Part shown: in pieces, positions 1 to 24,648 of the stretch
Numbering within the stretch: position 1 is the stretch's first letter
Layout of the letters: each line of letters starts with the position of its first letter
Assembly (NCBI GenBank): GCA_047495785.1
Contig: JBLDXI010000054.1
Coordinates: forward strand, 3,658,001-3,722,000
DNA from: Lepidodermella squamata
Lineage: Eukaryota; Animalia; Gastrotricha
Direction: 5' to 3'
DNA length: 64,000 nt
Made by a program: the position numbers and the translations under genes
Notes under the pieces: model-generated
What the model saw: only the letters and a program-made list of their open reading frames with translations
Databases searched by the model: none
Told to the model about the DNA's origin: nothing

Positions 1-492
1 AAAAACAATGATGCCTTATAATCGACAGGGTGCTCAAAAATATTTCCAAGGAAAATAAAATCGCGCCACCATGGTTCATCATATGCTATTTATGTCGCTT
101 TTATGAAATCGCAATTTTTCTAAATTTTTAGAGGCGCTTGAGTTTTGATCATACTAAGGAATTTTTACATCCACTTCTAGATAAGCGGCTCCGGTAATGA
201 GCGGTAACTTTTCAAACGCACAAACTTTCAAGGGCAAAAAACATTTTTCAATCAATTCGATGTAGCGCGAAAATGATCAAATGGTTAGAGTCTCAAGCTA
301 TATTTTGATGAAATTACCCCAAATTCACCGAAAATAGCTCGTGCCAAGTTAGGTGAAATATAAAATTTGCGCGCGCACTATTTTCTATTTTCTTTTCTAT
401 TTTTTCTATTTGCTATTTTCTTGAAAGCATTTCGCTGACGCGCAGTCGTCTTTGCTCTCGTCCGTGCGCGCGCGCGCACACGAAGACTGTAA

Positions 493-1864
493 TTATCTTA
501 GTTGTTGCGCAATAAGGCCCAGCCAATAGGAGCGCGCGCGCGGAGGAAACACCGGCGGATGGGGAAATGTGCTATCAGGAACAGTATTCATGAGATAAAA
601 TATCGCAACATCTGCAACGATGCTGACGAAAGCGACCAATGAGAAAAAGACGATGTCAATGAATTCAATGAGGCCTATGTCAAGTTTATCATCGCGTTCC
701 CGAAATAACATCGAGCACAGAGATACGCGCCGATCCTTGATCTTTTCCGTATCGGCAAGTCTGTTCCCGATCAGAGTAAATATAGTACACACAACAGCAG
801 TCGCTGATTTGCCCAACAGGAACAGGAAAATGTAAGGCGTATCGGCATAGACAGGCATCTTATCAGTCAGAGAAGTCTGAAGAACCATCACCGAGAGTAG
901 GACAGTTGTGCAGTAGATCGGACGATCTGGATGGCCGGCGGGCATGATGCCGGCGACTAGGAGAAGAAACGCCAGAAAATAAGCGGGTATGAAGACCGTA
1001 AATATGTAAACTCTATGATTACGCTGATATCTCAAATTGAAAGCTACTCGGTCGTAATATTTTCCATTGCTGCCAATAACCTGTTGGCTACTTGTCCACA
1101 CTCGAATCAGATACCAAAGACCTCCTGGGTCATCGAATTCGGCCCAATTTTTGATACTGAATTTCTCAGCTGTATCCAAGAGTAAGCGCTGAGTCGAATT
1201 AGGATCAGCTGATTGGTAAAGGAAAAAGCATGTTTGCCTGTCGAATGGAAATAATTTCAGCCTAAAAAATGGCAAATATAGTTGGGAATAAACATTGAAA
1301 AAATCATAAAACCTACTCAACAGTGCAATCGGCAGATATGATCGAGTTAATCTCCCACTCGATTTCGTTATTTATTATCTTCACTTCACTATTGTCCGAT
1401 CTATCCAGGAAGAACGATGAGTCTTGAGTAGCATCCAAAGGGTAAAGCTTAGGCAGCCAAAAATTGCTCGCCCTCTCGCGAATTTCTAAATAAGCTGGAA
1501 AGGATTCAGGTTGCACAACTTTCTTCAGACATGGATGGGTCCATCTCAACGTCAAACTTCCTTTTACTGAAAATCCAGTCTCGTCGATACTCCGAAATTG
1601 GGTCAGGTATAAATTGAGGCGGACTTCAAGCGGGTCGGGTGAGCATTTTGTCGCGTTTTGGCAATTTCTGTTCGCTGAAAAAGCGCCAAACGGGATCAGG
1701 GTGATATCATCCAAACTGCAGTCTTTTATTAATTTTGTCTTATACGAAGCGAATTCGGCCGAGTAGCTGTCCCAATTTTCGATCTGTCCCGTTACAAGTC
1801 GCGGCTGCCACGGTCCAATGGCGAAAAACGCTAGAATAATGCATCTACGGTATAACTTACTCAT
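493..1864 (-). CDS. Cys-loop (pentameric) ligand-gated ion channel subunit, non-alpha type
   Basis: Two exons (1864-1317, 1261-493) joined over a 55-nt GT-AG intron (1262-1316) give a canonical C-x13-C loop, CTVELKLFPFDRQTC. Also an N-terminal signal peptide, loop A FWLPKLY, loop D LTLRWTH, four TM helices (M2 DRPIYCTTVLLSVMVLQ) and a short M3-M4 loop. No vicinal CC in loop C. Confidence 0.9.
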
Positions 1865-2165
1865 TTTAAAATTGTCCAATGTCCAAACTTGAAATCACGG
1901 TATAATTTTCCCATATAGCGTTTATACAGCTGAGATGCCTAGATGATTTCTTGTAGCGTTGGTGTGTAAACATTCAATTACTTGAGTTGCGGATATAATT
2001 ATATCCGTATTAAATGGTGTTAGTAAAAAACCATTGAATTATAAACAGCCTCGTGTTTACTCTTTCGTCTCGAAATTTTCGATGACGCAAAACGCTGATG
2101 GTAAAAAAACGAAACTCAATCATCCCACGTTTTATTTAAAAAAATGATCCATCTTCGATCAAAAA

Positions 2166-3226
2166 TCATTCTCTTCCATCGTAATTAACGCCAATGCGTT
2201 GATGACTCCTGCTCAAACGTCCGCCGCAGGGGAAGTCAATAACATTATATATAGTATATATATACTTTGTTTTATACTTGAAGACGAGAGAAGAGGAAGC
2301 ACACGTTTGAATATAATTTTTTGTCAACAATCGTTCACAATTAGCTTTTTGTTTGATCCGCACGAAGTTGAACAGAGAATTAATATAATAGCTAATATCA
2401 TCATTGTTGATTTTGTGTTGAAGTATTTTTTCAGCGATACTAATAAAATAAATGCGCGCGCACGTTGTCATTTTTTACCACCGATGTTAATTAATTAAGG
2501 TGACCTTTTTTACTCGCGAGTTTTTTGAAAATAAAAGCATTGATTAAAGCCAAAGTTGGGATTCGATTTACATAAATTGGCACTCGAGTTGTTTCTTATG
2601 CTATTTTTTTTAATGAAATATTTTAGCGTGAAAACTTGGCACAGTATAATATTAAGATGGAGTAATAATATAATAGTTGCAAGGTGTTCGTTCGGTTCAC
2701 GAAAAAGAGCAACAACGTCGCGTCGTCGTTCAGAATTTCTCATCAGCAGGCAAATCAGATGTGCAGTGCTTTTGCTGGCTGTTATTACATACAATTTTGT
2801 ACACCATATGTAGTAAAATTTCGACTGGAAAGTACAGTCATGGTTTTTCGGCCTGAAGTGACCGGCAAAGTGAACAATGATAAAATTGAAATATCATAGT
2901 AAATTAACATTATTATTTGATAACAATTATCGACTACAGTTTTGTTTTTTTGTCTCATCGAGCTAGCTATTGTTTTTTTAATGCTGAGGTTTCTACCGAT
3001 CGTCCATGTAGCGAGGCAGGGTTGAAAATGGCCGGTGACCAGTTGCTGAGTTGATATTGTAGTCTTGAACATCATCAGGACCGCTTCTGTAATCAGAGAT
3101 AAGACAATAGTCAACATATAAAAAAATATAATTAATATTCAATAAATCCCAATTTTGGTCAAGCCTACAAAATGTTGGTAGGAAATGCTTTGAAGGTTCA
3201 ATCTGATTTAGAGTTCCATTATTCAT
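2166..3226 (-). pseudogene. Probable frameshifted rhodopsin-class GPCR remnant
   Basis: Four successive minus-strand ORF pieces in different frames resemble GPCR parts: N-glycosylated start (MNNGT), TM1-like LTIVLSLITEAVLM, TM3-like CYQIIMLIYYDISILSLFTLPVTSGR, TM5-like ATIILLLHLNIILCQVFTL, TM7-like YYINSLFNF. There is no continuous frame. Confidence 0.4.
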
Positions 3227-3303
3227 TTTGAGGCTCTATCACTAAATGTTTCCAAAAAATGGCTTTACGTCTCCCTTAAAATTTCAATTATTTAACTACA
3301 ATG

Positions 3304-3762
3304 CCTAAACGATAGATCTCACTATTACGAATATTTTGCGCTATCGGAAGTGAGTCTACGATCTATGCTTCAGACTGCCGATATCGATTTTGGGTACGGC
3401 GACAAAACAGCAACTTCGCGAAACAGCGAACGCGACAAAACAGCAGATTTTTTATTTCGCGACAAAACAGCGAAAACTTGCATCGTGTTTCTGCTGTTAT
3501 GTCGCAAAATGAAAAAGTTGCTGTTTTGTCGCGTTTGCTGTTTTGGGTATTTGCTGTTATGACGGTCTGCCCGATAAATTGTTGGTATCGATTTAACAAA
3601 TCAGTGATTTTTTTCATTATATCAGCCAACATTGAAAAATAATTTCCGCAGCCAGGTAGCTGGAATAGGAATCATAGGGTGACAGGATGCATCATATCGA
3701 TGAAAAAAAGGAAAAAATCGAAATCGAAAAATGGGAGAAATTTAATCCTGGAACCTCAAATT
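3304..3762. repeat. Dispersed repeat, copy 1 (interrupted by a foldback MITE)
   Basis: Shares ordered blocks cgatagatctcactatta, gccgatatcgatt, ggtatcgattt.acaaatcagtgattttt, ccaggtagct and ggaacctcaa with 10444-10730. Confidence 0.75.
3392..3572. mobile_element. Small foldback/MITE-like insertion
   Basis: Imperfect terminal inverted repeats (GGGTACGGCGACAAAACAGCAA ... TTGCTGTTATGACGGTCTGCCC) with repeated gcgacaaaacagc / gctgttttgtcgc units. Absent from the homologous repeat copy near 10530. Confidence 0.7.
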
Positions 3763-4109
3763 TGGGATATTTAGAGCAAATTTTCAATCTCTTGAAATAA
3801 CATCTAGGCAATCAGAAAAAAGGGCTCATATGATTTCGAACTCGGATAAGTAGCCCTGAATTATAAAGAAAAGTCTTCTTTAGACTACTCTCAGAAAAAA
3901 TTATCGATTTTTTGCAATCACTTAGGAATCGATATCGGTTCTGCTATCGGTTGAAGCGGAGAAAGCCAAAATTATTTTTACCCAATTATAAGAAATTAGG
4001 TATTTCAGTTTTTTGGGATAATGTATAATAATATTTCCAACATTCGCTATTTTTCCACTTTGCGAAGTTGGTACGTAAATTGAAGTCGAAAATAAATGGA
4101 ATGCTGAAC

Positions 4110-7100
4110 TTACGCATTCATGTTAGCGGCATACGCTCGTTGTTGGGCGAGCATTTGTTCGAACTGCTCCGGCGACATGTCCGCCGCCTCGGCCATCTCG
4201 TGCTGCAGCAGCGTCGGGCTGACGATGCCGCTCAGCCCGTTCGCCTCAATCGCCGTCTGCAGGAACTGCTGCGACTCGGCCGGCTGCTGTTGCATATAAC
4301 TCGCCGATGCGGGCACCATCTGCTGCTGCTGGCCGAGCGCGTCGCCGCTGCCGTAGATGGTCTCGTCGTAGTCGCCCTTGTGGTGCAGCATCGCCTGGAA
4401 CGAGTTGTCGCCACCTAAGGGCGACGGAATGTTGCGCGGCGACATCTCCTGCTGGTAGAAGTGCTGGCCGGGCGGCGCCGTCGGCGACCCGGCGTACTTG
4501 TACAGCGGCGGCGGCGAGTACGACGGCGACGGCGGCCGGTTGAGCCCGAGCGACGAGCCGCCGAACTGCGGCGACTGCGGCCCGGACGACATCGGGTAGT
4601 TGGGGTACACGAACTGCGAGCCGCTCTGGTTGAACGTCGGCGACATGAACGACTGCTGCGACGCGCCCATCGGGTAGCCCTGCTGCTGCGCGTACATCGC
4701 CGCTTGTTCCTCGTTCTGGAAAAAGTTACGCACGAAATTGCCGAACAGCGTGTGGCCGGTTCGCCGGTGCTGCGGCTCGTCCCACGTCTTCCAGATCAGT
4801 TCGTTTTCGTCCTCGAGATTGCCGGAAATCGCGCGCCGCATCTCCGGGCCGAGGTCGTGAACCGCGCGCAGACCAGCCTGCAGCGCCACGGTATGCTCCT
4901 GGCCTGACTGCAGCTTGTCCTTAACCTCGCGGTTCTTCTTGAAGCGCCGGAAGTAGTCCTGAATCAAGAAAGTTGCGTAGAATTTGCCGACTGTTACTTC
5001 GTCGTCATCACCCGGCGGCGGGATGATTTGATCCAGCAATTTCGCGCTCGTTCTCCGCCAGATTTTCTTGATAATCACGCGCAGTTCTTCATTCGCCTGG
5101 TCGATGTTTCCGTCGGTTTTAATTTTCAAACCAGTTCGGATGAGGGCGAACAGCGTTGCGTTGAAATTGACCGTTCCGTCGCTGTTCAGCGGCATGTTCA
5201 TCGATACGAGACGCTTACACGCCATACGATGCGGGCACAGTTTACCGAAACCGAGCGGGGGCGAGATTTTACGCAGCAATGTCACGACGTCCAAGTGTTT
5301 TATACGACCGTTAGCGTCAGGATCGTATTCAGACCATAGACGCACGAATTCGTCGAGATGGTGAGGACCGAGGATGGACCAATCGCGGGTTAGATAATCG
5401 AAATTGTCCATAATAACGGCGACGAACAAGTTAATGATCTAGAAAAATCATCAACAAATCAAAATATTGCAATTTTAAATTTCAAATTTTAAATTGCTAA
5501 AAAAAATTGAAAATTCATTTCTAAAAAAATTTAATTTAATTAACATTTTCTGAAAAATTATGTAACATTTTAAAATTTCGAAAATTTTAAATTTAAAAAA
5601 ATTCAAAAATTTAAAAATTTTTTTTTGAATTTTTTTTGACATTTCAATTAAATAAAAAAATTTAAAAATTACTACCTAATAAAAAAAAATATAATGAAAA
5701 TTCGAATTTTACTAACCAAAAACGAGCAGAGTGAGTAGAAAGAGATGAGGTAGGCATAGGCAACGTAAGTGCCGCATTCGCGCCTGCCGTTTCTGAAGTC
5801 TTCCGAGTCTTCATCGCAGAAGACGTTTGAACGCGGCGTCAGGGCCAACATGATTTCCTGCCACGACTCGCCTGTGGCCGATCTGAATAGGCAGAGCGTG
5901 GCTTGCGGGAACGACTGGAAGTTGTTGTGCCGGTGTATAATGTCGCCCGGGTTGTCGTCGCTGACCTTGCCGAAGACTTGCATGCCGATGACGGCGTACA
6001 CGAAGAACAGCATGACGATGAGTAGGGCTACGTAAGGCAGCGCCTGGAACGATTTAACGAACGTCCACAGCAGTGTTCGAATGCCCTCACCGCGGGCCAG
6101 CAGTTTTATAAGACGCATCACACGGAAAAGACGGAAAAAGTTGACGCTGAAGTTCACCGATTTTTCCGGCTATAAAAAATTCGAAAAAAAATATGAAAAA
6201 TATTTTAGCATTTTTTAACGCTGAACTTACGCTGACTTCCGTATACACGATATCAATAAATGAACCAACGACAATGACAAAATCTAGCACGTTCCATGTG
6301 TCCGCAAAATAATTCTGAAATTTAAAAAAAAATTAAAACAGATAATTAAACAAATATTTTTGTCCACCTTAAATCTGAAGGCCAGCAGTTTGAAAATCAT
6401 TTCAATTGTGAAGACGCCTGTGAAGCAATAATTGATAGACTCCATCGCCTTGGAGTAGGCAGCAGGTTGGCCATGGAACTAGAAAAAAATTGCCAAATTA
6501 TATTGCGTGACCTAGATTCGTTTTTTTCCCGTTTTTTTTACCTTCATGCATAGCGTGAGGGTGTTTAGCATGATGAATACGAAAATAACGTATTCAAACG
6601 GTCGCGATGTCACGAACCACCATATTCGATACTGCCACGGCGCTTTGGGAATATATCGCTTGATAGGCTTCGCCTTCAGTGCAAACTCGATACATTTACG
6701 CTGAAATACAAGAAAAGGTCATTACTTCAGTTTTTTTTAGGGGAAAACACATGACCCAGCCACAACGACGTTCTTTAATCCCGTCCACCGATTCGAAAAT
6801 GAAATTCGGGACTTTTCTCAACTTGAGAAGAGTCACAAAAAATCTACAAAAAGCAATTGCACCACCAGTTGTACCGGTAATTTTCACTAAATTTTCCGAA
6901 AAAATTCGAAAATCCCATTCTAGGAACCCGCCCCTGTTCCCGAGGTAGCGCCAGATGAGCCGAAATTTGTCGCCCCTGAAGAGCCGGTTGAAGTTCCGGT
7001 TGTTGAAAAGGATACAACAGCTTTCGCTAATTTCTCGAAATATCTCATCGAGCAGCCGACTGAAAAGTGTTACGTAGCTTTCTACCACCACGTCCCCAAT

Positions 7101-10100
7101 GTCACGTATCGCGAGGTTGTCGAGGGCATTCAAGCCGCCTTAATCGCAGCCTACCGACCGCCAGATTCAATTGTTAGCGTTGAGCTAGTCCCTTTAATTT
7201 CCCGAGCGCCTGAATACTACACCGAAAATCGCTGGGTGGTAGAAATGGTGGACGAAGAGCTGGCGTCGCTGCTATTTCGAAGTGATGTATACGTTCGAGC
7301 TCGCAAGGTGAATGTTACGAGCCTATCTCAAGCTATGGCGGCGGAGAAATCGCGAGAATTCCGCGACCAGTTGCGATTAAGAATGCAAAAAGCTGGGCAA
7401 AAACCAGCCCCGGTTACGCACGGAGCCGGGCCCGGAATGGGACGGCGAATGTCCCGAGCTACCCGGGTCCTAGACTTCATTGAAGACCCTAAAACTGCGG
7501 TGCAGCTACAATTCCAATGAATTACGGTGATTTTTGACAGAAATCGGTGAAATTTGCAATATTTTTGTGAGACTTTATCCTACGACACGGACACATTTCA
7601 TCCGAAAACCAAAAATTTGACTAAAATGAATCTCGAAGTCTAGTTTGCCTCAAATCTTATACAAAGGATCGATTTCATCATTATCAATTAGATTTCGAAG
7701 CCTTTAATGAGATATGACCTAGTTTTGAATCCGGGTTTTTGTTCAATTTTACAGCAAAAATTAATTGGGTCAACTATTTGAGGGTTTCATCATTCTTATT
7801 GTTTGCAAGAGACACAAAAAAATTGAGGCAATCCCATCCAAGTTTGGAAAAAATTTGTCAAAATTATATTTTTGACCAAAATTAACATCGCATAATTAAC
7901 GTTAAATTAAAGGTTTTCGGATGAAATTTTTTTACCTTTTTAATTTTTTTTAATTTTTTGTAATCACGAAATAAAAATTTGTTATACGCACCTGATTTTT
8001 GTCGAGATCGCATCCTCGGTATTCTTCCTCGCCCTCGTGCTGGAAGGTGACGATGACAAAACCGACGAAGATGTTAAGCATGAAGAAGGCGATGATGATC
8101 AAGAACGAAATGTAGAAAATCGCGATGATGGGCCGGTAATTTTCGATCGGGCCAACGTTAACGTCGACGGAATCGATCGATTTCGCGAGCAGGCCCGGCC
8201 AGCCTTCGAAGGTTGACGTCGCGAACAGCGACAGCATGGCGTTGGCTACATTGTCGTAGTTCCACTCGTTGACTGACCAGACGCGTTCTTCAATCAGCGG
8301 CATTGATATGTTGTTGTCGATGTAGCGGATAAATTTGCCGCGGCAGTCGGCTTCGTACAGCTTCGTCGAGTCTGAGCATGAGAAGAACTTGCCGGCGAAG
8401 AGTTGCACGCCGATGCAGGCGAACATAAACTCGAGCAGTAACATGACGAGCATGATGTTGCTGATGGTTTTGATTGACACGATGACGCACTGAACGACCT
8501 GTTTTAGGCCCTTGGCGCGGTTGATGGCGCGCAGGGGGCGCATGACACGCAACACTCGAAGCACCTTGACTACTGAGACACTGTCGCTACTGAAAAGCGG
8601 AAAAAAGATACACAAAAAATTAGCAAAAGATGGCGAAAAATAGTAGAAAACAAAATCGACTGTAGGGTATCCAGAGGGAAGCTTCCTTTCATATTTCCGA
8701 GCCAAATTCGAGAAGTAAGCTGTCTTGAAATTTCACGATCCACCTTATTTCAAATTTCAATTTTTTCATACAGGTTGTCCCAAGAGTCTAAAAAACGAGA
8801 CAACTTTCGATCTTAATAGACTGAGGGTATTTAAAATGTCATGTGAATTTTAATCAGCAACGAAAATTTTCAAGCGGAATTTAAAAAATCCGAAGAAACG
8901 CAGTTAAGACAGGAAAAATACCGATAATTACCAAACTATTCCCATCGGGTTTTTTCGGGTTTTCCCCGGTTAAATCGAAGAAAACGGATACATAATGAAA
9001 AGGAACCCCTCATAAAATTGATGATTGAACCTACCATCCTGAATTGGGCTACTGAATCCTTTTAACTTAACTTGACATTTTTCGGGGCAATCTCGGGAAC
9101 CTAATATTCGTAACCCAAATGGCCTCAAAGTAAAATTGCAGCCTCAAAAGTAAAAATTCGTTCGTAGTAATTTGAATGGAATGCAAATTGCACAAGTTCA
9201 AAAAGTGAGCGAATCCCACTTGATATCGGCCGATTAATCTATAATAAAAATTCCTCCTTAAAATAAACTCACTCTAGCACGAAGGAAATCCAAGATACAC
9301 AGACGACGACTAAATCGAGAATATTGAAGGAGCTGCGGCAGTAAGAGCCGCGATGCAGGAAGACACCGTAAGCGATAACTTTCAAGCAGATTTCCACCGT
9401 GAAAACAGCCGTGAAGAAGTAGTCGAAATAATTTAAAATCTGAAAGACAAAAAATGGTCGAATTAAAGAGAATCATAGTGGCGAAATGCTTACATCATTG
9501 CGAGCTTTGTCAATGCCCATAGGATCTTCAGCAGCTAACATAGCACTGGAGACGATAATGCAGGCCAAAATGCAGTTGGTGAAGTAGGAATGATTGGATA
9601 AAAAGTGACAGAAAACGCGAACTCTGAAAAAAACAATCGCATCATTAAAATTTCCATCTTCTCAGAAACACGAAATATCAACTTGTTATCAGGCTGAAAG
9701 ATGAAAAACGAGGTGAAGGGAGGGATAGGTTTAGCACGCCGTTTCTGGTTCATCTCCTGAATACGACGCGGCAGAGCTCCGATTTTAAGTTTAGGCGCCT
9801 CGCCCTCCTTGCCGTCCTCAGTCTCGTCATCAACGCCCTCTTCATCGTCGTCGATGACGTAATCATCGTCGTTGATCATATCGTCTTCAAACTGAACGAC
9901 AGCTTCTTGTTGCGGCTGTTCGGGCGGCATTTCGGCCGCTTTCAGAGGAACAGCCGCCTCCTCCGCCTTCTCAGCACCTTCAGCCGGCGTCGTCGACACC
10001 TGTTTTTGCAACTCGCTTTCCTTCTTCGCCTGATCGCGCTTGTCACGCTCATCCGTCAGCGAATCAGCATCGGCCAAGTTGTCGACGGCGATGGCCAAGA

Positions 10101-20611: not shown

Positions 20612-21644
20612 AATCTGTTGTAAAAAAACGGCCCACTACCCTTTCCAAATTATAAATCCATGCGTGTTTTCAATAAATAATCTACCTATAATTTTGTCTT
20701 CAATTTACTATTAGAGAATAGTTGAAAAAATGTGTCGGATATATTTTATGTATATAATTTATTTTAATAATGTTCTTATTATTGACCGAATTCCGATTTC
20801 TGCGACAATTCAATAAAAATGCTCGGTGTTTTGACGCAATGCTTGTTTTTTCCCACGCGTTGCCCGTTGAAATTATATGATATTTCGCCTAAATATTTCA
20901 AACTCTAAATTTTACAAGGTGGCTGAAAAATTCAGCGTTTTATACACGCGTTTTATCCTTTTATTTTCAGTTGGTTTTTTGGGGTTTTATCGAACTGTTA
21001 CGGGGCGATTTATTTACATCCCAGCACTGAGTTTCAGCCGTTTTCAGACCTCACATAAAGATTTTCAGCGCTTAATTTGCTAAAAGAGTTGAAGCGTTCA
21101 AATATTAATAGCATCGTGATGTGGCCGCAAATCGATATCGATTGGAAACAGCGCTTGTGCCACTCAACCGCGCCAGCCGAAGTTGTAATATAAACTACTT
21201 CGGCTAGATTTTTTTCAGGTAAAGAAAGCTCGACTCAAATAAGGTCGCCAAAACATAATCGTATTATCTGAAATTCAAAAAAATTCTGGCTGGTCGTGTT
21301 ATATATATTTCTGCAAATGCACATGTTGTGTAATGAATCGGGCATTGGGCATGCCTATAAATATTCTTCATTTATGCAGTCCATATATGTATACTTGCGC
21401 GCACAACCAGTACTAGGTACTTGGCTAGTGATTTCTTATTTCTATGCTGATTGTAAGAATAAACATGTAACCGGCTACCGAGGAGGCGCGGGGATGTCTT
21501 ACAACAGCGTGCAGCTCGTGGCACGTGATGGTAGAAATCCGCTCATGTGAGACGTCAGCCGACATATTAGACATGTTGGCCTCACATGGTGCTGGTAGCC
21601 GGGTTCACTCTGTGCTGGTTAGTTTCGGAATCAATTAGGAATTA

Positions 21645-23076
21645 AATATTTGTATGATATAACATGAGTAGGAATCTATATTTGAGTGAAGCACGAAATA
21701 TAGATCGAGTAAAACGAATGAAACGAGTGAAATCGAGGCGGAACGAGCCGGTAGGCGAGTGGAGACGAGATTTCACGAGGTGAATGAGTTTTACGAGATC
21801 TATACGAGTGCTTCACGAAAATATAGGTTTCTACGAATGTTGTATCGTAAAATATTACACGGTGTCTATATTTTTCGCAAAATAATAAATAATAAATAAT
21901 AAAAAATCCAACCTAAAATTTCATTGAAAAATGGCTTTCTATTCATTCTCGCTCATTTTACTCATTCGTTCGAATTTCGTCTCGTTTTGAAAGTCGATTT
22001 TCTGTCCGACCGGAATTCTGCTCGAATTTCACGAACAAATGCTCCCAGAATTCTGCTCCGATTGGCAAAGCTGCCGCAATTGAAGCCGAATGGTTCGATA
22101 ACCCATCAACCCTGAAACCTGGTTCCTTCGAAATCAACGTTCGCGAAAACCATGCGCCTTTACAATCCGAAGAAACTGGCTCGATTTGAACGACACGTTT
22201 GGTGGCGATGAAAGAATGTCAAGCAGTCCGTCGGAATTTCATCTCTGGTTGTTGAAAATGGCTCAGTTTCGGACTAGCGCGTCGCACCGGTGTTTGGTAC
22301 GTCGATGTTTTCAACGTGATCGAATCGGAACTGTCGCAGGCAGAGTGCTCCAAGTTCAAGGTGGTGATCAAGTTTCAAGGTGGTGATTTCTGCGAATTGG
22401 GGTCAAAATGCTGTCCGATTTTCTGGATTTTCTGCTCAGTGTTCCCGGCGCGTTCTATCGATCTATGGAGGCGACTTGTTGACCGTACGATGTTCGATGA
22501 TCTTCTGCGCGATCCGACCCACGAATCGCTGCGAATTCATGCACAGCGGGGACGAAATGCTGCCCGATTTTCCGGAGTTTTCTGAGAAATTCTGGTTCCT
22601 ACGGCCAATTTCTGCCAAGCGCTCCCCGTCTAAATTATTCTAAAAATTGAATTTCTCCATTTTATTTCATAATAAATTGCGTTGCGAAAACTATATCCCT
22701 GTGTTTTTCCGTTAGAATTAGCTGTTTCAAGACCTCGGAAGTATTGGGCTTGGAAATGGGCATCTATATTCAAAATATAGATTTCCCAGGTCAAAAATAT
22801 AGATACACCTGAATCTATATTTCAGATATAGATCAGAAATATAGTTCATATTCAAATCTATATTTGAAGTATGAAATAATATAGATTTGTGTTTCAAGGT
22901 TAAAAATATAGACACAGTGTTATATTTGTATGGTATGACATGAGTAAAACGTTTATATCTGTACGGAGCCGCCCGAGATTTACGAGTCGGAACGAGCCGG
23001 AGGCGAGTTGCGATGAGTAAATCGAGTGCGGCGAGTTCAGATATGAACGATTTACGAATGTTATACCGTAAAATAT
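21645..23076 (+). mobile_element. 1.4-kb putative non-autonomous element bounded by two related long hairpins (21645-21856 and 22922-23076)
   Basis: Both hairpins run atatttgtatg.tat.acatgagta ... tacgaatgtt.ta.cgtaaaatat with a central aacgagcc-gg(t)a-ggcgagt. Inner inverted repeat 21857-21875 / 22902-22920 (18/19). Array of aatatagat/atctatatt motifs at 22760-22910. No intact internal ORF. Confidence 0.7.
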
Positions 23077-24648
23077 CGAATTGTCATAGCGACTCGACCT
23101 ATATTTTTGGCGACAATTCTATATTTATTTATATTCTATGTTTTCTATATTAATGCATTTACTGCTGTTTTATGAAATAAATCCCTCAAAGTGGCGCCTT
23201 ATATACCTAGCTGGCCGCGTTTGCTCCCTATTCTGTAACGCAATTATGAAAGCCCATAAGCTTTCCAAATTCAAAAGTATCCCGTAACAAAAATTTCATC
23301 TAGTAAACTAATTGTGTGAAACAGGAAACAAGATTATTACCCATACAGATGCGCAAAATCGTGTTTCGCGCATTCCACACACAAATTTGCATATTTATTT
23401 TACAGGAGATGAAATTAATGCTATCATGGGGCAAATTTACCATACGCCTGCGTTTAAAACTTCGATCATTTCTTTCTGCAAGATATGTCGATACAGGGGT
23501 CGGTCCAGTTTATAATTATACTACTTACTAAACCGGACGTGGCGCAGATTCCACAGATGCGCATTGCGATAGCGTGGCATCTTCTCGTGACGCGCATCTC
23601 ATGATTAATTGCAATTAACCACCCAGTGCTGGCCAATCACCAAAGGCAACAAAGCGGCAGCAAGTGTTCGAATAAGTGTTCACCTATTCAAATGCAAGCA
23701 TTTTACTCAGAAGGGTTGATTAAGTGCGGTGAATTTCGCACCGGTCACGTGCACGTCTCCCCTCTGCAAACTTGGCGCTGCAACATTATGACGCTGCTAA
23801 TTAGTTAGGTCATAAATTTTTAAATTAACGTTTACTTATAAATGGGTATTCATTATTTATTGAATTTTCATAACGCTACTTTCCACCATTCAGCACAATG
23901 CCAACTCTGACCTCTGACAAAGCTGGGAAATTTCAGCCAAAATTCCAAGGGGTTTTGGCTGAGTTATCGCTTGCCTGATCTCAGCTGGCTAAATTGTCGT
24001 AGAGCCAACAAAGCACACGTGTTGATAGCATATTGCAAATGGGGACCGCTTTATGATATATGAAGGCTGGTGTATCATTTTTGGCACACGCGCATTCCTC
24101 TAAAATTATTCTCACCATTTCTCTCTACAGTACTTTTGCGAGCCACCAATCCATCATAATATAACCTTCTTTCATACCCTAAAATCAACTTCCGTTTATT
24201 GACGTAGCCTTGCTTATGTTATATTCATTGGTGTTGTTTCGAAGCTGATTTTTGCGATTTGTCAGACATTTTCCCGGTCTGATGGGGTGCGACGTGATTG
24301 ATTCATCGCCTTCATAATCGTTCGAATACTCATTGGTTTTGATTGAATGAACAGCCCCGTGATTTAATACTTGAGACTAATGTTTAATAGCGATCAACTA
24401 ATCAAATCTTGGCAGCACATATAACATGTATTTATTATTTGTTAGCTCACATACACATCAATTGTGTTGAACTTTGGGCGCTCAGATATTTTGGTCAGAG
24501 CCTTGAAGGAATCGGTTCAGGCGCTCTTCCTTCTGGCTAATTACACCATTGCCCAAATTATTATTACTTAATAACTTAATTATTATAAGCACGATGGCAT
24601 CTAATATGCGGAGCAGGGCTGTTAATCTTCATTGCACCCTTGCGTAAG

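Follow-up and report, generated by a model that had tools for sequence, protein, structure and literature searches.

Introduction

Cryptons are transposable elements with 4–6-bp terminal direct repeats that are taken as recombination substrates, without terminal inverted repeats (TIRs) or long direct repeats, and a mechanism for their transposition has been proposed (PMC3212892). Here we analyse a locus of the gastrotrich Lepidodermella squamata at which two elements with ends of this kind are headed by long imperfect hairpins. The window, that is, the whole stretch of 64,000 nucleotides that was analysed (contig JBLDXI010000054.1 of assembly GCA_047495785.1, forward-strand positions 3,658,001 to 3,722,000), contains at 21652–23126 two adjacent non-coding mobile elements of one family, which we call B and A, arranged head to tail. 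Both insert precisely and in a fixed orientation after the word YTATATTT, without target duplication and with a preference for the ends of resident copies, and both carry a conserved, strand-biased hairpin that holds the junction. On balance, we lean towards the reading that they are Crypton-type elements of the non-autonomous kind and that their recombination site lies in the folded top strand.

Cryptons are defined mainly by what they lack, and we know of no experiment in which their movement has been shown. CryptonA elements, which have no TIRs and no target duplication and in which a 4–6-bp terminal direct repeat is taken as the crossover site (PMC3212892), resemble A and B in these traits, and the hairpin-headed ends of A and B recur in an intact CryptonA of the same genome. 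Unlike CryptonA elements, A and B are non-coding, and no cognate recombinase is found among the matches listed. Note that the Crypton papers examined, PMC3212892 among them, make no mention of a hairpin, palindrome or stem-loop, and that wider searches gave no publication in which hairpins of this G.A-phased kind are tied to Cryptons or to transposons of any sort.

In integrons, an imperfect single-strand hairpin, attC, holds the crossover, extrahelical bases and flaws in the stem select the strand, and cassettes that share a short core are stacked head to tail. A and B share with attC the strand asymmetry, the bulged base at the crossover and the head-to-tail arrays, and by analogy attC recombination may be taken as the closest working model for them. 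However, integrons are bacterial and use a fixed platform, attI plus intI, and their attC sites measure 57–141 nt and have no G.A phasing, whereas A and B use dispersed YTATATTT words in an animal genome, and their use as single strands is proposed from sequence design. Tyrosine recombination on single strands is known so far from bacterial integrons and a few phages.

Two further systems are close. The IS200/IS605 elements insert 3' of a short fixed word without duplication, carry subterminal hairpins on one strand, as do A and B, and have cleavage sites that are read through the bases beside the hairpin foot. A and B differ from them in that no HUH gene was found, the hairpins are 5–10 times longer, the host is a eukaryote and a single complementary segment serves both ends. 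The HINE/DINE-1 elements are likewise non-coding, with T-rich boundaries, no clear target duplication and a terminal sequence of which an inverted repeat stands just before the palindrome at one end. In contrast to A and B, their palindromes are 5–10 bp long and lie 8–35 bp from the end, and their partners encode Rep/helicase proteins, whereas no Rep locus lies near the copies of A or B found.

Results

Two elements of one family lie head to tail

The preliminary description of this DNA had taken the two hairpins as the bounds of a single 1.4-kb element. Instead, each hairpin is the 5' head of an element of its own, which carries YTATATTT at its 3' end (Table 1). A single element with hairpin ends is ruled out by the permuted copies and by the presence of A alone at many sites, the arrangements seen at the different loci being B alone, A alone, B-A, A-B, A-B-B-A and A-A-A. 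The first bases of both elements, G-TATG..., belong to the foot of a long hairpin, and both elements close with YTATATTT, which in B is TTATATTT at 22920–22927. The element boundaries are sharp, and the flanks (20700–21645 on the left and 23127–24100 on the right) are single-copy.

The suggestion of a mobile element was borne out in the whole assembly (121 Mb, 151 contigs), in which the family is multi-copy. Searches with hairpin 1, with the interior of B and with hairpin 2 plus its tail each returned dozens of copies, and both filled and empty sites were found; 40 candidates were scored per search and 100 hairpin pattern matches were listed. B is present in at least 45 copies, 83–96% identical to the window copy and 86–99% to the consensus of the copies. 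For A there are 261 candidate places in the genome, and 29 distinct young copies have a mean identity of 98.7% to their consensus. The hairpin foot motif occurs 198 times with at most 2 mismatches, further head variants lie beyond these, and the wider family comprises at least 200 copies; a metagenome scan for the hairpin foot gave 0 matches. B has no open reading frame longer than 89 amino acids, and similarity to a Crypton recombinase was looked for in it and not found. Beyond its hairpin, A consists of a 50-nt tail only.

Table 1. Features of elements B and A in window coordinates; pair counts are from the alignment of the 5' arm against the 3' arm of each hairpin
Feature	Position	Strand	Description or basis
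Host target ATATTT, left copy of the 6-bp direct repeat of B	21646–21651	+	Target logo, fold
Element B, 1276 bp, non-coding	21652–22927	+	Genome copies, boundary comparison
Hairpin 1, head of B	21652–21855	+	First base G21652 bulged; foot AAATAT at 21850–21855; 75 Watson-Crick, 4 G.T, 21 G.A positions, 3 other mismatches
Loop of hairpin 1, GCC-GGTA-GGC	21750–21753		
Post-hairpin segment of B	21850–21875	+	Complementary to the last 26 nt of B (22902–22927)
3' subterminal region of B	22750–22927	+	Dense in the terminal/target word CTATATTT, both orientations
Element A, 199 bp, non-coding	22928–23126	+	Directly after the terminal ATATTT of B
Hairpin 2, head of A	22928–23076	+	First base G22928 bulged; 5 tandem G.A steps; 56 Watson-Crick, 4 G.T, 10 G.A positions, 5 other mismatches
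Loop of hairpin 2, GCC-GGA-GGC	22999–23001		
Post-hairpin segment of A, AAATAT-C-GAATTGTC	23071–23085	+	Complementary to the last 15 nt of A; folds
3' end of A, GACAATTC-T-ATATTT	23112–23126	+	Closes with ATATTT, which is the element's own and forms the right-hand direct repeat copy

Other features of the family were also seen. The interior of B contains a 46-nt direct repeat twice (22386–22431 and 22535–22580, 76% identity) and a 19-nt unit three times (22010–22063), and partial copies of this interior that have no hairpin occur on other contigs, for example at C1:3178753–3179311. Among the head variants, one (L024:1267–1456) has a GA-rich simple repeat in place of the hairpin apex, and a subfamily with GTCTGATATAGCACGAGTA at the foot counts about 15 exact copies. 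A third head variant, considered as a long element (L081), proved to be a 115-bp decayed derivative. Finally, at G000:C7:1568423–1571622 (L079), five clustered tRNA genes (for Glu, Pro, Pro, Gly and Lys, locus positions 411–1318) are flanked by an A copy and a 5'-truncated B copy.

Precise insertion after YTATATTT and preference for resident ends

We derived a target logo from insertions into host DNA, 24 for A and 12 for B. Directly before the element, the 5' flank carries YTATATTT, with positions −6 to −1 fixed at 92–100%, and the 3' flank is unconstrained. The 3' end of the element always reads YTATATTT and was constant in 34 of 34 A copies. Since this end is invariant and the variant targets ACATTT, GTATTT, CTATTT and ATACTT are not copied there, the right ATATTT belongs to the element and the target is not duplicated. 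In total, 34 A and 17 B copies have ATATTT as their left flank and again as their right terminus, and the two ends are not mutually inverted. The comparison of empty sites, which had been proposed as a check, agreed: in the pair compared, the filled and the empty site differ by the element only, with no target duplication. At locus L059, a copy of A sits inside B after an internal CTATATTT, and the difference between this filled site and the empty one in the window (22830–22900) is exactly 199 nt. We also considered a miniature inverted-repeat (MITE) or foldback derivative of a DDE transposon; this candidate was rejected, as the whole palindrome is confined to one end, the 5' and 3' termini do not form an inverted repeat and the target is not duplicated.

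Nearly half of the distinct A insertions (16 of 34) coincide with an end of a resident copy of A or B, all head to tail: 8 lie right after a B 3' end, 4 right before a B 5' end and 4 at other A ends. YTATATTT occurs 13 times, in both orientations, in the 1.48 kb of A plus B (21646–23126), compared to 17 times in the other 62.5 kb of the window, about 0.27 per kb. This outside density corresponds to tens of thousands of sites genome-wide, so that with 16 of 34 insertions at resident ends, these ends are favoured by roughly two orders of magnitude. At the window locus, A shows 0 changes from its consensus and the terminal branch of B is 1.7%; of the two, A is probably the later arrival. At other loci, B is accompanied by an A subvariant whose tail bears four diagnostic changes, and some B-A pairs seem to have moved as units.

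Strand-biased hairpins with phased G.A pairs

Strand-specific hairpins with tandem G.A mismatches, the core of the preliminary description, are present at the locus. The palindromes span 21645–21858 (hairpin 1) and 22921–23078 (hairpin 2). When the + strand was folded with DNA parameters, hairpin 1 (21645–21860) reached −43.3 kcal/mol, compared to −16.5 ± 2.6 for shuffled sequences (z −10.4), and hairpin 2 (22920–23080) reached −38.4 kcal/mol, compared to −15.8 ± 2.5 (z −8.9). The − strand folded more weakly (−33.5 and −29.5 kcal/mol, respectively), and across the DNA folds the advantage of the + strand is 8–10 kcal/mol.

The flaws of the stems are mostly G.T or G.A, as had been noticed. G.A pairs make up 75% of the non-Watson-Crick positions in hairpin 1 and 53% in hairpin 2, compared to about 17% expected if mismatch types were uniform. 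In hairpin 1, 8 clean tandem 5'-GA/3'-AG steps were counted automatically and 10 by eye, which together with the 5 in hairpin 2 matches the earlier estimate of about 8 and 5. Of the 26 arms that make up the 13 clean steps, 25 have the Y-GA-R context. It is established nucleic-acid chemistry that sheared tandem G.A pairs follow the Y-GA-R rule, and C-closed GNA mini-hairpins are known to be stable in DNA. Both loops were located as described (Table 1); in many other copies the hairpin 1 type of loop is GGCA, and the GGTA/GGCA and GGA loops are all closed by a C.G pair.

Successive steps are separated by 18, 23, 9, 4, 5, 10 and 10 bp in hairpin 1 and by 24, 9, 9 and 10 bp in hairpin 2. With distances of 9–10 bp in the outer halves and 18–24 bp near the foot, the steps fall roughly on one face of the helix. 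Foot and apex are common to the hairpins of A and B and the mid-stem sequences differ, yet both pair throughout.

The hairpin structure is conserved

The covariation, or selected structure, that had been suspected is supported by compensatory changes and, in B, by conservation of the hairpin above that of the interior. Among 17 B copies the mean pairwise identity is 95.9% in the hairpin versus 88.8% in the interior. For B, the change per site amounts to 0.007 at Watson-Crick positions, 0.013 at G.A positions and 0.036 outside the hairpin, and in A it is 0.018, 0.012 and, in the tail, 0.049. Hairpin positions in B change 3–5 times less than the rest of the element, and the paired and G.A positions of A about 3–4 times less than its tail. 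Across copies, the G.A positions are conserved on a par with the Watson-Crick ones. When 14 A-like hairpins are aligned, pairing is kept in 95% of the cells, compared to 29–49% in slid controls, and 5 pairs are altered on both sides, a result reached by 3 of 500 shuffles. Moreover, variant lineages contain new tandem G.A steps derived from Watson-Crick pairs.

In at least 4 of the B copies read (L028, L029, L030 and L043), the 3' arm of hairpin 1 bears a deletion, a different one in each. The match ends of the genome search indicate about 8 B copies with 3'-arm deletions, all of which start near 21791–21796, and this pattern suggests that the palindrome of hairpin 1 may be prone to recurrent breakage or slippage.

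A single post-hairpin segment pairs with both ends

The bases after the hairpin are complementary to the last nucleotides of the element, over AAATAT plus 8 nt in A and over 26 nt in B, in which this inverted repeat is 92% complementary. At the left junction, the post-hairpin AAATAT has a second partner in the target word; in the window, ATATTT at 21646–21651 pairs with 21850–21855, the foot of hairpin 1. Joining the ends would lengthen the stem by 15 bp in A and by 26 bp in B. Whether the junction is the joined or the left one, the crossover ATATTT/G lies inside the stem, with the first base of the element, G, as a single bulge. The fold of the joined B junction has −61.2 kcal/mol, versus −49.3 for the other strand, and the top strand of an A circle would give a nearly fully paired rod with −40.6 kcal/mol, versus −32.8 for the bottom strand. 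Several of the CTATATTT copies in the 3' subterminal region of B form short inverted pairs as well.

An intact CryptonA element has the same end design

A genome search with Phage_integrase revealed a young multi-copy family that includes L083 (G000:C74:137300–140300, element at about 231–2353), an intact element of 2.12 kb with 12 copies of 98–100% identity. Its gene has two exons, which were searched separately, and one short intron; it matches DUF3504 and Phage_integrase, and the HSAR and GHAS...Y motifs are visible in the protein. Homologues bear the names KIAA1958-like and ZMYM4-like, which are those of Crypton-derived genes.

The 5' hairpin of L083, on the sense strand, comprises 75 Watson-Crick, 4 G.T, 12 G.A and 3 other positions, with Y-GA-R steps. 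It lies upstream of the ATG, and the stable strand is the sense strand (−52.4 kcal/mol for + versus −43.5 for −). The 3' end of the element pairs with the segment after the hairpin, and the joined ends form one long hairpin. AGGAA is common to the flank and the 3' end of L083, and the repeated word GGGCAGAA is found close to the 3' end. The relatives of L083 include many internal-deletion derivatives, and at least 10 copies exist of a non-coding relative of about 1.08 kb that retains nothing beyond the 5' hairpin and the final ~100 nt. In its end design L083 matches A and B; its sequence is unrelated to both.

A and B have the traits by which a Crypton would be recognised at its ends: short terminal direct repeats (the 6-bp ATATTT) without TIRs, no target-site duplication, and the end architecture of a bona fide Crypton of the same genome. 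The recombinase queries (Pfam Phage_integrase, DUF3504, the L083 protein and a 3-sequence profile) yielded no tyrosine-recombinase partner with A/B ends among the matches listed, and ATATTT/GTATG ends are absent from the three recombinase loci read (L083, L084 and L085). Longer copies encoding a tyrosine recombinase or an HUH protein had been named as a check; neither gene adjoins any copy found. The earlier label "possibly Crypton-like" thus stands as the best-supported guess, through the end design of L083 and the 6-bp repeat without TIRs or target duplication, and the partner that it implies did not appear among the matches listed.

The other two recombinase loci differ from L083. L084 (G000:C17:2243300–2246300) contains a single-copy tyrosine-recombinase exon, whose product is 42% identical to the L083 protein, and beside it, in the opposite strand, an ankyrin-like frame. 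The exon lacks hairpin ends and may represent a Crypton gene that has been domesticated or has decayed. At L085 (G000:C30:480100–482900), a DUF3504 frame of 337 amino acids ends at a perfect 39-nt palindrome with two 18-nt arms around ACG (about 780–830 in locus coordinates; 1975–2020 on the − strand). A second copy is present on contig C36, and the palindrome may be the end of another inserted element.

Other enzyme classes and families

Transposition by an HUH or rolling-circle enzyme was the initial guess and was dropped, since no Rep match adjoins any hairpin copy found. The genome has 41 Helitron_like_N matches, none of them adjoining a hairpin copy. The Y1 transposase profile (PF01797) had no genome match while its controls matched, and the viral Rep profile (PF02407) had none, with its controls also without a match. 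An Rfam search gave no match either.

One Helitron locus (L082, G000:C30:1359500–1369499), the only one with a Rep match near a hairpin, was considered as a partner and rejected: it is a canonical Helitron with its own ends, and the A nearby is a 5'-truncated fragment behind other repeats. This Helitron measures 7.25 kb (about 144–7399, − strand), starts at A/TC, has a GC-rich 3' hairpin and ends at CTAG/T; three copies of 99–100% identity exist, and two further repeat families, one of about 250 bp and one of about 420 bp and both unrelated, occupy the same locus. The Helitron hallmarks, namely a 5' TC, a 3' CTRR, insertion between A and T and a 16–20-nt hairpin about 11 bp from the 3' end, are not found in A or B, whose ends (GTATG... 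and ...YTATATTT) and target (YTATATTT/N) are unlike those of Helitrons.

Discussion

A model for the movement of A and B

The likeness of A and B to L083 suggests, by analogy, that a Crypton-type tyrosine recombinase supplied in trans would move them. For excision, the two ATATTT copies would recombine with each other, and the element would reinsert at YTATATTT words. The junction of the excised, joined element would read ...AATTCTATATTT/GTATGGTATGAC... (that is, ...CTATATTT/GTATG...), and the preference for the ends of resident family members would build the head-to-tail arrays. The substrate may be the folded top strand, in the way that the integron integrase acts on folded attC, because the flaws of the stem are of kinds that are stable in one DNA strand. 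The phased Y-GA-R pairs and the C-closed GNA/GNNA loops would allow only the top strand to fold well and would keep the duplex from forming a cruciform. A single-strand route would also render transposition replicative, as the copy numbers require.

Several points weigh against this model. The sequence of L083 is unrelated to A and B and its core word, AGGAA, differs, so that L083 probably does not encode their cognate enzyme. Among the matches listed, no recombinase gene is within reach of the A/B-type hairpins, although a partner could be missed. The enzyme is proposed by analogy only, and the exposure of a single strand is postulated from the design of the hairpins. Conservative tyrosine recombination by itself does not account for the growth in copy number. 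Finally, RNA parameters favour the same strand, and more strongly, by 26–33 kcal/mol (−96.4 for + versus −63.4 for − in hairpin 1, −79.1 versus −52.8 in hairpin 2), and folding energies alone therefore cannot tell DNA from RNA.

Alternative explanations

Single-strand transposons of the HUH or rolling-circle type (IS200/IS605, Replitron or Helentron-like), whose enzyme, guided by the hairpins, would cleave the top strand behind ATATTT at each end, would account for strand-specific hairpins, for insertion 3' of a fixed short word without duplication, and for a 3' end that is identical to the target and whose complementary guide lies at the foot of the hairpin. Also in keeping with them are the tandem arrays, the high copy number and the Helitron-like Rep matches of the genome, and read on the − strand, the order of 5' repeat, inverted copy and 3' palindrome resembles the Helentron/HINE layout. 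However, we consider such an origin decidedly improbable: no Rep match is near any hairpin copy found, the one Helitron read is of the canonical kind (TC...CTAG at the ends, a hairpin that is short), the genome is without Y1_Tnp or Viral_Rep matches (with the reservation that the Viral_Rep controls were silent too), and the HINE palindromes of 5–10 bp compare with 75–100 bp here. Moreover, a tyrosine-recombinase gene, that of L083, sits within the same end design, and a site-specific recombinase would be expected to favour the ends of resident elements as strongly as is seen here. The palindromes could also act as ordinary duplex DNA without any folded strand, being symmetric arrays of words (CTATATTT and the CGAG type) to which the recombinase or an accessory protein binds, with the G.A pattern a by-product of words that lie on the same strand in both arms. 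Tyrosine recombinases normally act on duplex sites with inverted binding arms (PMC3212892), the terminal word CTATATTT is present 13 times in both orientations, and the YGAR words do recur on one strand. Binding words, however, would not require the mismatch types that are stable on one strand, the Y-GA-R context or the GNA/GNNA loops. Nor would they explain why the arms between the G.A steps are kept complementary by compensatory and wobble-compatible changes, or why A and B each pair in spite of their different mid-stem sequences, and duplex recognition appears unlikely to us.

The hairpin could instead act as RNA, in a + transcript, as a 5' leader, as a source or decoy of small RNAs or as a guide of the recombinase. 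The preference of RNA parameters for the + strand speaks for this, as do the sense orientation of the stable strand of L083, upstream of its ATG, and the frequency of G.U and tandem G.A pairs in RNA. Yet Rfam holds no match, and A, which is a hairpin plus a 50-nt tail, still spreads, which argues that the hairpin is needed in cis for the mobility of the DNA. In addition, both the near-exclusive Y-GA-R context and the loops (GGA and GGTA/GGCA, closed by C) agree with established rules of DNA stability, namely sheared G.A pairs and GNA mini-hairpins, rather than with the GNRA loops of RNA. A role as RNA is very improbable.

The reading of A and B as Crypton-type elements with a folded top strand can also be put in a bolder form, which we regard as doubtful. 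Instead of the sequence, the recombinase would read the shape of the hairpin, that is, the phased sheared G.A pairs, the bulged crossover base and the mini-hairpin loops, and would exchange a single strand, in the manner of the integron integrase on attC; transposition would be replicative and the arrays cassette-like. One enzyme could then move hairpin elements of unrelated sequence, and the very young A and L083 families might share it.

Significance

Element A offers a compact and young substrate of 199 bp, with the crossover ATATTT/G, a strand-specific structure, a target word that is clear and a natural bias towards its own ends. The design rules of the hairpins, with Y-GA-R steps about one helical turn apart and C-closed GNA/GNNA loops, can be tested with oligonucleotides. 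If the folded strand is indeed the substrate, single-strand tyrosine recombination would extend to animals, and this would explain how a "conservative" recombinase family amplifies to hundreds of copies.

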